Positions 44,856 to 56,610 of a DNA stretch of 64,000 bases are shown here, piece after piece. The stretch covers positions 74,149 to 138,148 of the forward strand of contig JAKMXF010000362.1 in assembly GCA_024704765.1 (NCBI GenBank), given 5' to 3'. The notes under the pieces were generated by a model that was given only the letters and a program-made list of their open reading frames with translations, was not told the DNA's origin and did no database searches. The first letter of the stretch is position 1. Each line of letters begins with the position of its first letter. Origin of the DNA: Oopsacas minuta (Eukaryota; Animalia; Porifera). The position numbers were made by a program, and so were the translations under genes.

Positions 44856-45473
44856 ATGTGTGCTTACAACATGAAACAGGCGGGCAATATGATTGACCCT
44901 TTATCATTTCAGATAACTCCTCCCAATTATTATCCTCCGAACTACTATGACCAACTACCTCAGTTAAGCCCTTCCCCTAGCCATCCACCTTCAGTCTTGA
45001 TATCGCCTCAACCTATTCATACTTCCCCCAATGAGTTATACCTCAAATCATTCGGTATTGCCATTACACAACATGAAGCTGATACAATGTACCTTTTGAG
45101 TAAGTGTCTAGAATCGGAATTAATATTAAATCAAAATTGGAAAATACTCTTTCTTAAGCGCAGCTTCTTAAAATTTGTTGATAAAGACAAAGTTGCATAT
45201 GAAATTTCAGGGAAAGAATTAAATAGAATTTTATCATCCAGCTTCTTCACTGCTAGCGAACAGAAAACAATCAGAAAGATGCGCTACCAAGGCCGAAACA
45301 ATATGGCTGCAAAACGAATGCGTGATAAGAAAAAGGAGAGTGATGAAGAAGATAAATTAGATATTGTGAACATGCAAAGAGAGAAACTAAAGTTGGAAAA
45401 TGAGAAAGAACAGATGATTAAAGAAATAGAGCAATATAAACAGCTATTTAATAATCCACAAAATCAAAACTAA
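44856..45473 (+). CDS. bZIP transcription factor, CNC/Maf-like
   Basis: Pro-rich N-terminus; ISGKELNRIL...FTASEQKTIRKMRYQGRNNMAAKRMRDKK resembles the CNC basic region; a coiled-coil zipper follows. Confidence 0.75.
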   Translation: MCAYNMKQAGNMIDPLSFQITPPNYYPPNYYDQLPQLSPSPSHPPSVLISPQPIHTSPNELYLKSFGIAITQHEADTMYLLSKCLESELILNQNWKILFLKRSFLKFVDKDKVAYEISGKELNRILSSSFFTASEQKTIRKMRYQGRNNMAAKRMRDKKKESDEEDKLDIVNMQREKLKLENEKEQMIKEIEQYKQLFNNPQNQN

Positions 45474-52675: not shown

Positions 52676-53614
52676 ATGAATCTTTTAACAAGAAACTGTT
52701 TTACATTACTTATTCGTAACAAATACATTCGTTTTATGACGAGTAACAACAGCTTCCAAGATTACTCAAAGGTCGCTAATTTATACGATAAACATAGAAA
52801 AGGTTTTGGCTACGAAATAATATTTGGAGCTTTATCAAAATATGCTTATGATAAACCATTGTTTTCTCTGAACATACTTGAGGCAGGATGTGGCACAGGT
52901 AACACTACAAGGGAGATATGTAATTATGTCGGTCACGTGACTGCTGTAGATTGTAGTGACGACATGATAGCCATTGCAGAGGATAAATTGAGTGATAAGA
53001 AGAATGTATCCTTCAAAAATTTGGATCTAAGAACAAGTCTTCCGTATGAATCGAATAAATTTGACGGCGTACTACTCATTCAGGTTGCACATCATCTAGA
53101 TGAAATTGGACCTGATGGAGTTGTTAAAACAGAAAATCTACAATCACTAATAACCGAATTCAACCGTGTTCTCAAACGAGAAGCACCACTGATTATGGCT
53201 GTATTCTCACCAAGACAAATTACAAGATGTATGTGGTACTATCATCTAGCTATGGAGAAGGGGTTCTGTGATGTTATGCTCTTGCATTCAAGGCGATTTC
53301 TTCCACTTGAAATATTTTCAAAGATATGTAAAGAAAAACATTTCGAAAATGAGAAAATTATCGTCCCAGTTTCGGAACTAGTTTTTGACCCTGAATATTA
53401 TTTTGATCCTAAAAGTATACTTTCTAAGGAGTTTCGTTCGGCTCAAAGTGGTTTGAGGGATTTTGAAAAATCTGATAAGTTTCCACTCCTAATGACAGCG
53501 TATCAGGAATCTATAGAAACTAATGAAGTGCAAGAGTATATCAGACAATCTGAATGTATACGAGCTAAAGAAGGTATGATCACTTTTCTCATTTATAACA
53601 AGGAATGTTATTAA
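52676..53614 (+). CDS. Class I SAM-dependent methyltransferase
   Basis: YSKVANLYD, motif I ILEAGCGTG, VTAVDCSDDM, LPYESNKFDGV, QVAHHL, EFNRVLK. Confidence 0.88.
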   Translation: MNLLTRNCFTLLIRNKYIRFMTSNNSFQDYSKVANLYDKHRKGFGYEIIFGALSKYAYDKPLFSLNILEAGCGTGNTTREICNYVGHVTAVDCSDDMIAIAEDKLSDKKNVSFKNLDLRTSLPYESNKFDGVLLIQVAHHLDEIGPDGVVKTENLQSLITEFNRVLKREAPLIMAVFSPRQITRCMWYYHLAMEKGFCDVMLLHSRRFLPLEIFSKICKEKHFENEKIIVPVSELVFDPEYYFDPKSILSKEFRSAQSGLRDFEKSDKFPLLMTAYQESIETNEVQEYIRQSECIRAKEGMITFLIYNKECY

Positions 53615-54173
53615 TTTCACTCTCTTATCACTTAGTGTTATATTTATTATTTATCATAACTTTTAAAATACTCACATACATCTAGTATTATATAAACCTG
53701 TAACATCTATATTATATATATTTTCATGGATTACATTAAAATGTGTCTACAAAAACTTGCAAGGCATAGTACGTTATTCCTCTAAAACAGACCTTTTTCA
53801 CCAGAGGTCGGCGGACTTCCCAATTTAAACCCCTGCTGTGAACCCCCATACACTATAATACAACTTTTGTGATCCTGTGCATCACCTCCTAACGTCCTTG
53901 GACCAACAAGGGATCCTTGGAACCCAATTTGAGACCGCTACTTCATTGATATTTAAAGTGGTCGTGTTGTGAAACTCAGTCTTATTATTCTTTCCATTAC
54001 CTACTTAGCCGGGAATAGCCAGGGTGGGGCACAAACCGCTCTTAAAATTGTGTGTTCACCAAAAATTGGCATTGAAAAGTACTGAAGTGCTACAGGCGCA
54101 GCAGCATTGCCTAAGCTTTCAGATACAGCGGGTAGAACTAAACACTAATACTGTTATCGGGTGAGTTATAAAT

Positions 54174-54700
54174 CTACGAAAAGTTAGTCAAGTTGGCTGA
54201 CTCAGAACTTTCTGAAGACGCAAATTGTTCTTGCAATTCTTGAGTCTCACACTGGTGAGGTACGAGATTACTCAATTTAGAAGTGAACTTGAGCGAGTTT
54301 CCGTCCAGGTTCCAAAACTTGAGCCCACGCACTTCATGCCTCAAAGTACGTTCATCTATTACTTCATCTGCTGTGGTACTCTCTTCAACGTCCAATTCTT
54401 CTAATATATCGTTTAAAGAACAAGAAGCATCAATATCTATGGGAATTCCCTTAGAGAAATGATACCTCTCACGTTTTTCTCTATATAGCATATAAAGAGT
54501 CTTTATTAGGAGATGACTCGCTGTCGTAGAAAACTTGAGTCGACTTTTTTTGATGTGGAGCGAGTTGCTTACTCATACTGAATGCTCTTTCGAGACTTTC
54601 AGTAGTGATCCACTTCCCAAATAACTCTAATATACAGTATTTGAATGATCCCCACTGATGTGCTGTCAGCTGTCTTAATAGGTAATCCTATGAAATGATT
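54174..54700 (-). pseudogene. Unassigned degenerate coding remnant
   Basis: An open frame DYLLRQLTAHQWGSFKYCILELFGKW... follows an AG and shifts into ORF 54174..54491. Family not recognised. Confidence 0.3.
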
Positions 54701-54932
54701 AGTAAACTTCTTCCGTTTTGAATATTTATCGATGTGGTGACAGTTGATAATCACACGTTTTTGCAGTTATTGCAGTGGAGTATGAATAATTACACAGTAA
54801 TGTATAAAAAAGAAGAGTTACTTAAGCACACGCACACGAATAGTAAAAAAGATAGCACACAACCGAGTACCAAAAATAGCTAATCAATACAGAAATTACA
54901 CACTAAATATATCTATAATCTAATACACCGCT

Positions 54933-56203
54933 TTACTTTTTGGTGAAGCATTTTGTGAGAACATCCTCCATGTCTTGTCTCTTCTTTTCCGTCATACTAG
55001 GCGAGGACACACCTTCTCTTACCATCTCATAAAGTTCCGTATAGACAAGGTTGTTTGTACCTTGATAGAATTCAACAGTGGAAGGAAGAAGATAGCGTAT
55101 CTGCGGAGGATTGAGGTCCTGGCCCATGACTACTGCTTCTCTGATTCGCGCACCTAAGAAAACGTTCATTCTTGTCAATAAATGTACCGATATATCATTC
55201 AAATGTTATTATCAGTATTACGTATATTAATGACTTATGTTTACCTCATGCAACAACCTTAATGAATTAACTCACTTGTAAAAAACTGAGCGAATTGTCC
55301 GATTACTTTCTTTTTCTCCTCACTGGCCTGTTCGAATCTGACTTTATTTATTACTATTGCATCTGTGAATACGAGGACTAACTTCTCTTTCCCTAAGGTT
55401 GGAGTCAAGGCGCCAAAAGCTTTAAGACTGCCATTTGAAGCATCTAATATCTTTCCAAGAATTTCCGAAAATCCATAAAAGTAAGCGATTTTGCCATTAA
55501 CAATAGCCTGGATAGTCTGGTCAGTGCTAAGTTGTTTCTTTGGAAATAGGGAGGAGAATTCCGTAAGTCTTTGGACGACTATTGGGTCAGGTTTCCCCTG
55601 AAGAACATCATCGATTCCTTGCTGCAAGCTCTGTCTTCCATGCACATCAATAAACGCGTCAAGGTATATGAATGGCAGGTACCAACCGTCTGAATCATCC
55701 AACTTTCCCCCCAGTAGTCGAGTATAATGAGATTTATTCGGTTCTACCATATACTTCTCCGCAACATAAGCACTATTTTTAAACTCATCATAATCTTTAT
55801 CACCCATGTCAATTGCCAATTCTCCACTCCGTTTTACTTCCATTATAAAGTTACCACAGCATAATGTGGGATAACCAATGTGTGCCCCTCCTTCCACCTT
55901 GACAGCTTCAACTGCAGGGGTGAGATACCTGAAAGGCTCTATTGCAACTTCTAACACTTTTGTGTGGAAGTCGTCCTTACGAGCCATATCAAATTCTAGG
56001 ATATCGAACCCATCCGCTCCTAGATATTCTGATAAATCGGGAGCATATGGATTGAACTTATCCCCAATCACTAAGTCTAGATCTGTATTAGGTGATACCT
56101 TCTTAAATTCTCTGCTTATCATTTGTATGTAAGAATCATATGTATCCTCAATATTTGCAAATGGAAACAAACCAACCTTTAGAATATCCGATTTATTCGC
56201 CAT
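54933..56203 (-). CDS. Thiaminase I (thiamine pyridinylase) homologue; two exons, 56203-55276 and 55153-54933; 382 aa
   Basis: LKVGLFPF, NPY, DILEFD, GYPTLCCGN, YLDAFID, FYGFSE, VFTDAIVIN and RYLLP...YTELYEMV are collinear with recalled Paenibacillus thiaminase I motifs. The 122-bp GTGAGT...TTTCTTAG intron is phase 1 (A|GT = Ser) and joins the two ORFs in frame. Confidence 0.85.
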
Positions 56204-56610
56204 TCTTTTGGAAAGGAATATTAATTATAAAGATAGTCTAATTTGGATAGTAATTGGGTAGGAATTGAATTCGCGAACTGATGTAAATAATTCGTAAATT
56301 TGTTGGATGATCTGACAAGTAATCTTTTAATCTTCCAGTAACCCAACAGGTTGCTAAATGGGAGATATCTCAGCAACCTGTTAAGGCCAAAATGTATTTT
56401 CAAGAAATATTTTACATTCTTTTCCTACGGTCAAGTATTATTGTAAATATTATTGTGTTTAGTAGCACTGTTTCTGTATTGTCCTGAATTCAAAGATGTA
56501 ACCTCACTATTCTCATTAAGCAATAGTATCGCAGTTCGTGAATTTGTCGGTTACTGCAATTTACAGTAACATAACCCCCCCGAACGGCGGAGTGTACATG
56601 CCACGATTAT

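Follow-up and report, generated by a model that had tools for sequence, protein, structure and literature searches.

An apparently expressed two-exon gene of the thiaminase I family in the glass sponge Oopsacas minuta

Thiaminase I causes thiamine-deficiency syndromes in food webs, and its physiological role is still unsolved. The form of the enzyme with a periplasmic-binding-protein (PBP) fold has been described from bacteria and a single amoeba, Naegleria gruberi, and the sole characterised animal thiaminase I is a TenA-like protein of unrelated fold (PMC9839694). Does an animal nuclear genome nevertheless carry a PBP-fold thiaminase I with its catalytic residues in place? The question is raised by a locus on the reverse strand of Oopsacas minuta, at positions 54933 to 56203 of the window, by which we mean the whole 64-kb stretch of DNA that was analysed and to which all positions refer. 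A preliminary description, made from the sequence, had joined two open reading frames (ORFs) there into one protein of 382 amino acids and called it a thiaminase I homologue. Animal homologues of the PBP-fold enzyme are not unprecedented, given that BLAST matches in animals have been reported, in Rotifera only (PMC10499793). Our search of the accessible literature for sponge, cnidarian or bdelloid rotifer thiaminases turned up no paper, and the Oopsacas genome paper does not mention the present gene.

The gene is present as a single copy in the window. When left unspliced, the ORF of exon 1 (56203..55259, reverse strand) enters the intron and stops at 55259, and the frame of exon 2 is that of a second ORF (54933..55202, reverse strand) terminating in TAA. 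The two are joined by removal of a 122-nt GT-AG intron (55154..55275, reverse strand), which is in phase 1 and splits the codon of Ser310 (A|GT). Its donor, AA|GTGAGT at 55276/55275 with the GT at 55275-55274, fits the consensus, and its acceptor reads TTTTCTTAG (TTCTTAG|), with the AG ending at 55154. The coding part of exon 1 (55276..56203, reverse strand) extends from the ATG at 56203-56201 through residue 309 to the first base of codon 310, and contains the codons for Cys116 (TGT, 55858-55856), Glu247 (GAA, 55465-55463), Asp72 and Asp281. Exon 2 (54933..55153, reverse strand) supplies the last two bases of codon 310 and the sequence up to residue 382, followed by the TAA at 54935-54933; it encodes the RYLLP and Y-x-E-L motifs and the C-terminal helices, and its product aligns with the C-termini of the Hydractinia protein P0014 and of the bacterial thiaminase I structures 2THI and 4KYS. 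A scripted check of the spliced coding sequence gave 1149 nt, corresponding to 382 codons plus stop, with zero internal stops.

Four public runs cover the stretch, three from one sample (X2, X3 and X4) and one from another organism (X5). The contigs of X2 and X3 follow the genome without a break through the intron at about 55-66x and end in Nextera adaptors. Those of X4 end in TruSeq adaptors. In this run both exons are covered at about 1000-2800x, the intron bin 55178-55254 has no coverage at all, and from about 54900 downstream the depth falls to about 82x. Moreover, an X4 contig joins 55150 directly to 55273, skipping 122 letters (CT..AC, with the cut displaced by +3), which is equivalent to removal of the GT..AG intron 55154-55275 on the reverse strand. 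The library type of X4 is absent from the public record; because its depth is exon-shaped, its contig carries the intron joint and its adaptor sequences differ from those of X2 and X3, we infer that it is an RNA library. The splice proposed in the preliminary description, for which RNA reads had been suggested as the check, is thus found exactly in an RNA-like run, and the frame that it creates is open.

The transcribed exon 1 includes a 5' untranslated part (56204..56239, reverse strand), which extends to the end of the X4 contig match and contains an in-frame TAA at 56229-56227, eight codons 5' of the ATG. Since this stop lies within the transcribed exon, an upstream exon would not provide an N-terminal extension or a signal peptide. 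The 382-aa protein itself has no signal peptide, in agreement with the preliminary description, and strand 1 of the fold begins at residue 7; the protein is presumably cytosolic. A TAG acceptor (56240-56238) adjoins position 56239, where the RNA-like X4 contig departs from the genome and goes on upstream in gene orientation by 14 letters, …ATAAAAAAACTTAC. These letters occur nowhere in the 64-kb window; they come either from a 5'-UTR exon lying far off or from a leader added by trans-splicing, and one of about 37 nt has been reported in another glass sponge, Aphrocallistes vastus (PMC10282587). At the other end, the 3' untranslated region appears short (54870..54932, reverse strand), its end being approximate, as the high X4 depth ceases inside the bin 54870-54946 (1302, against 82 in 54793-54869). 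Further along this 3' flank, a stretch of about 52 nt (54705-54756) is the sole matching part of certain contigs in all three runs of the sample, which diverge on both sides into foreign sequences identical across X2, X3 and X4; it looks like a short dispersed repeat.

The 382-aa product is 100% identical to residues 1-382 of a public O. minuta protein (P0001), which is named 'Spherulin' and is 483 aa long. The public model shares the 122-nt intron and adds a third exon, using a donor (AA|GTAAAG) that splices out the TAA stop and appends an ORF at 54174..54491 on the reverse strand, which we judge to lie outside the main product. No such joint is found in X4, where the high depth ceases just 3' of the stop and contig 19 (depth 82) is colinear with the genome over 54285-54903. 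Additionally, the third exon is without a Pfam domain, and similarity to relatives stops at the TAA. We take the main product to be 382 aa, with a rare longer isoform possible on the contig data. The full 483-aa protein matches no Pfam family at E<=10, so that the name 'Spherulin' is without domain support. The Hydractinia model P0014 is likewise extended, after ...ILKPL, and read-through there reaches a stop three codons on. The thiaminase I family is already known, and the sponge gene adds a member whose public annotation is misnamed and over-extended; both the name and the 483-aa model call for correction in the public record.

The surroundings of the gene are those of the host. The window has a GC fraction of 0.35, and the published O. 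minuta genome has a GC content of 36% (PMC10280926). Flanking genes recognised by Pfam are eukaryotic, namely a bZIP gene (44856-45473) and a methyltransferase gene (52676-53614). The preliminary description had taken the gene for a resident of the host genome and had named a chimeric contig as the danger; with the X2 and X3 DNA contigs colinear with the assembly and the flanks eukaryotic, this view holds. The methyltransferase gene (Methyltransf_11/25, forward strand; region 52676-54314) is convergent with the thiaminase-like gene, and an X4 contig (1703 nt, depth 126) extends from it to 54314. Because of this contig, the low-level transcription over 54285-54903 may be a long 3' UTR of the methyltransferase gene.

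Family membership is invisible to the simplest searches. The 382-aa protein, searched singly against Pfam, NCBIfam and the PDB, matched no family and returned only sub-threshold acyl-carrier-protein noise, and an animal-only profile, built from 11 sequences, failed to reach the thiaminases in the PDB. There is no match to the Pfam model PF22141 (Thiaminase-1_dom); because the bacterial relatives also fall below its cutoff (17-20 bits, cutoff 27), this model does not cover the present branch of the family. SBP_bac_1 and SBP_bac_8, the Pfam models of solute-binding proteins, likewise gave no match at E<=10, and an export signal is absent. An exhaustive profile search yielded 244 representative relatives at E<=1e-3. 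A clade-only profile, built from 25 full-length members of the eukaryote-like clade described below and without recognisable bacterial sequence, matched C. botulinum 4KYS at E 7.8e-25, B. thiaminolyticus 2THI at 1.6e-24 and Naegleria 4HCW at 9.8e-17, whereas the best solute-binding protein followed at 2.2e-5, about 20 orders of magnitude behind thiaminase I. A mixed profile ranked them in the same way (1.8e-37 for thiaminase I versus 2.4e-12). Furthermore, hhalign, used to compare the animal-only alignment with a cyanobacterial/myxobacterial one, gave a probability of 99.9 (E 3e-32, 340 columns), and BLASTP found 23-27% identity to cyanobacterial and myxobacterial proteins over about 360-410 aa, including 27% over 360 aa (92 bits) to a Nostoc protein. 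Searching a word index with the 85-sequence alignment brought in hardly anything further, and ESM Atlas neighbours were mostly SBP_bac_1/8 clusters plus one 'thiamine pyridinylase' cluster. The HMM comparison by which the homology was to be judged therefore comes out on the side of the preliminary description, the best profile matches being catalytic thiaminase I structures, ahead of solute-binding proteins.

A first AlphaFold2 (AF2) model, for which 11 sequences were used, reached a pLDDT of just 57.6 and was discarded. With 85 sequences, the AF2 model reached a pLDDT of 95.3 and a pTM of 0.93; the part encoded by exon 2 has a pLDDT of 94-98, and the structural alignment extends to residue 381. 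Foldseek placed 3THI and 4KYS at the top (1.7e-17, versus 5e-15 for sugar-binding proteins). VIA-align gave Z scores of 31.9 and 30.9 for 3THI and 4KYS over 333-336 residues and 30.4 for a glycoside-binding protein, which amounts to a tie. The model and both comparisons show a type-II periplasmic-binding-protein fold that spans the whole protein. Since the fold ties with sugar-binding proteins, the assignment to thiaminase I rests on the profiles and on the residues.

Only three columns, P112, C116 and E247, are invariant in the 85 sequences, whose mean column identity is 18%. In the profile alignment with 2THI, Cys116 corresponds to Cys113 and Glu247 to Glu241, with the motif G-F-S-E around Glu247 aligned with G-Y-S-E. 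Asp72, Asp281 and Tyr53 correspond to Asp64, Asp272 and Tyr50, which, together with Tyr16, are further active-site residues of thiaminase I; the roles of these Asp and Tyr residues were reportedly described by Campobasso in 1998 and Sikowitz in 2013. At the position aligned with Cys116, 4KYS shows Ser in place of Cys143, and the deposited structure is reportedly the C143S mutant. The motifs that had led the preliminary description to consider the protein catalytically complete (Cys in PTLCCGN, Glu in GFSE, Asp in EFD and FTD, and the C-terminal YLLP...YTEL) do align with thiaminase I positions. An entirely intact active site is a different matter: the Cys/Glu pair, Asp72, Asp281 and Tyr53 are conserved, but the residue aligned with Tyr16 is Phe13 in Oopsacas, where almost all relatives have Tyr. 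In thiaminase I, the Cys owes its activation to the adjacent Glu; in the myxobacterial homologue CcThi1 the C148/E269 dyad is essential, a C148A/E269A double mutant being inactive (PMC10499793).

A careful maximum-likelihood tree of 61 sequences, unrooted and in agreement with a quick tree, splits at 100/100 into a bacterial group and a 31-member group that we call eukaryote-like, a label drawn only from sparse ORFs, Mb-scale contigs, retroelements and an SRCR fragment in the assemblies concerned. All 19 named bacterial sequences, obtained by a contig profile search with a 9-sequence bacterial alignment, fall in the bacterial group (Nostoc, Scytonema, Dolichospermum, Archangium, Cystobacter, Sorangium, Acidobacteriota, Gemmatimonadota and others). 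Within the eukaryote-like group, Oopsacas, its closest relatives and two paralogues of Hydractinia symbiolongicarpus form a clade of 10 members (100/100). H. symbiolongicarpus has at least two paralogues (LOC130636844 and LOC130647813; represented by locus L006 on CM055238.1 and by protein P0164), both with N-terminal signal peptides. Signal peptides are thus present in the Hydractinia proteins, as they are in the sister clade, and absent from the sponge proteins. Another clade contains a protein of the demosponge Ephydatia muelleri (KAL5516710.1; P0186, P0116 cluster) together with the P0094 cluster; its members are without signal peptides and appear uninterrupted at the site of the Oopsacas intron, and they include two JGI records named 'thiamine pyridinylase'.

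A phase-1 intron interrupts the identical codon in Oopsacas (A|GT), in Hydractinia locus L006 (A|GC, 78 nt), in locus L008 (G|GT, about 4.7 kb) and in locus L051, which has a donor identical to that of Oopsacas and encodes a protein 74% identical to the Oopsacas one. In locus L007, the ORF terminates at that intron point, and its exon 2 was not found within 5 kb; members of the sister clades have single ORFs across this point. Because intron codon and phase are common to Oopsacas and Hydractinia, the gene has long been resident in this animal lineage, and a thiaminase I-like gene has probably existed in animals since before the divergence of sponges and cnidarians. The preliminary description had proposed an old horizontal acquisition. 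The shared intron bears out the age; as to the transfer, the gene lies inside the eukaryote-like clade and not among the bacteria, and since the animal clade nests there, apart from the bacterial enzymes, a horizontal origin is no more than possible.

The run from another organism, X5, holds a copy that is about 96% identical over positions 54992-56400, retains the intron and is more diverged in the intron than in the exons. Of the exon-1 differences, at least 26 in number, those listed comprise 14 synonymous and 12 non-synonymous changes, with the active-site residues untouched, counts that may be read as a rough sign of purifying selection. The same copy has Phe in place of Leu114, as in Hydractinia.

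Our main reading, which we consider probable, is that the locus is a resident, expressed, two-exon nuclear gene of O. minuta whose product belongs to the thiaminase I branch (thiamine pyridinylase, EC 2.5.1.2) and has a type-II periplasmic-binding-protein fold. By its sequence, the 382-aa protein would be expected to cleave thiamine as the bacterial enzymes do. Glu247 would deprotonate Cys116, and the Cys116 thiolate would add to C6 of the thiamine pyrimidine, so that the thiazole could be expelled from the methylene bridge. A co-nucleophile (an amine, thiol or pyridine) would then attack the methylene, replacing the thiazole and freeing Cys116, while Asp281 and Asp72 would hold the aminopyrimidine in place. 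To our knowledge, animals are without the enzymes to rebuild thiamine from its halves, and thiamine salvage for the sponge itself is therefore unlikely. We also know of no obvious use that an animal unable to make thiamine would have for a cytosolic enzyme that destroys it, which counts against the main reading.

The most serious rival keeps the fold and the Cys/Glu chemistry and changes the substrate: the protein might be a detoxifying or base-exchange enzyme acting not on thiamine itself but on an antivitamin, an analogue or another pyrimidinyl-methyl quaternary compound. Distance from the characterised enzymes speaks for it (18-19% identity to 2THI and 4KYS in structural alignments, 23-27% to the cyanobacterial and myxobacterial proteins), as do the replacement of Tyr16 by Phe13 and an intracellular location, the bacterial enzymes being secreted or lipoproteins (PMC10499793). 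However, all mappable pyrimidine-binding and catalytic residues are retained, and no other substrate class is known for the thiaminase I family; we regard this alternative as rather unlikely. It is less likely still, and indeed improbable, that the protein merely binds a ligand, its ancestor being a solute-binding protein or a thiaminase that had lost its activity. The fold is common to hundreds of sugar-binding proteins at nearly equal Z, and the ESM Atlas neighbourhood of SBP_bac_1/8 clusters would fit such an origin, but the Cys/Glu dyad has stayed invariant in 85 sequences despite their 18% mean column identity and the profile E-values prefer thiaminase I by about 20 orders of magnitude. 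A Pfam solute-binding match and a signal peptide are both lacking, and animals are not known to have a partner ABC importer of the solute-binding type.

A third possibility concerns the origin of the DNA and not its product. That the sponge lineage recently took the gene up from a bacterium or symbiont, or that the contig is chimeric or contaminated by bacterial DNA, would be in keeping with a family that is mostly bacterial and with a genome that was assembled from a low-complexity metagenome (PMC10280926). Against this stand the spliced intron, the eukaryotic flanks and the host-like GC, the intron shared with Hydractinia, and the position of the animal clade (100/100) within the eukaryote-like clade (100/100), apart from all 19 named bacteria. 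We give this possibility hardly any weight.

The syncytium of O. minuta houses an abundant archaeal symbiont (PMC10280926), and it can be speculated that the enzyme controls vitamin B1 or antivitamins there. In a wider conjecture, which we hold only tentatively, a PBP-fold thiaminase I with its phase-1 intron would already have existed in the last ancestor shared by sponges and cnidarians, most animals having lost it later; in the glass sponge, it would be intracellular and abundant, perhaps acting on symbionts. If so, the thiamine-cleaving enzyme of early animals was no relative of the TenA-like enzyme that fish and mussels have, and the glass-sponge enzyme might adjust the levels of B1 or antivitamins to the benefit or detriment of intracellular microbes, for example the archaeal symbiont. 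Hydractinia, which shares the intron, and Ephydatia, which represents the second clade, offer tractable systems for studying what the enzyme is for.

The best-known members of the family, the thiaminases I of Bacillus/Paenibacillus thiaminolyticus (2THI, 3THI and 4THI) and Clostridium botulinum (4KYS), share with the sponge protein the fold over its whole length (Z 31-32, 333-336 residues), aligned Cys and Glu residues as well as two aligned Asp and a Tyr, and the C-terminal YLLP motif. In contrast to them, the sponge protein comes from a spliced animal gene, has no signal peptide and carries Phe for Tyr16, and at 18-19% identity the relationship escapes single-sequence search. Its closest named bacterial relatives are the myxobacterial and cyanobacterial thiaminases I of the CcThi1 type, which differ from it in being lipoproteins or secreted proteins and in forming a separate clade at 100/100. 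Activity has been reported for Archangium and Cystobacter homologues (PMC10499793), although the loci compared here are not necessarily the assayed genes. The enzyme of Naegleria gruberi (4HCW) is eukaryotic and of the same family, but the Firmicutes enzymes are closer to the sponge protein than it is (structural Z 27.7), and it belongs to a protist, not an animal. Family-1 ABC solute-binding proteins (SBP_bac_1/SBP_bac_8) have the same fold at nearly the same Z; what sets the sponge protein apart from them is the catalytic dyad, together with the lack of a signal peptide and of a Pfam match.

Among animals, the point of comparison is the TenA-like thiaminase I of fish and mussels (zebrafish NP_001314821; PMC9839694), which is likewise encoded by an animal gene with introns and for which thiamine cleavage with a co-nucleophile has been proposed or demonstrated. 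That enzyme is an unrelated TenA/PqqC-like helical bundle without similarity to microbial thiaminase I (PMC9839694), and is thus a functional analogue of the sponge protein and not a homologue. Set beside it, the spliced and apparently well-expressed glass-sponge gene represents a second, independent kind of candidate animal thiaminase.
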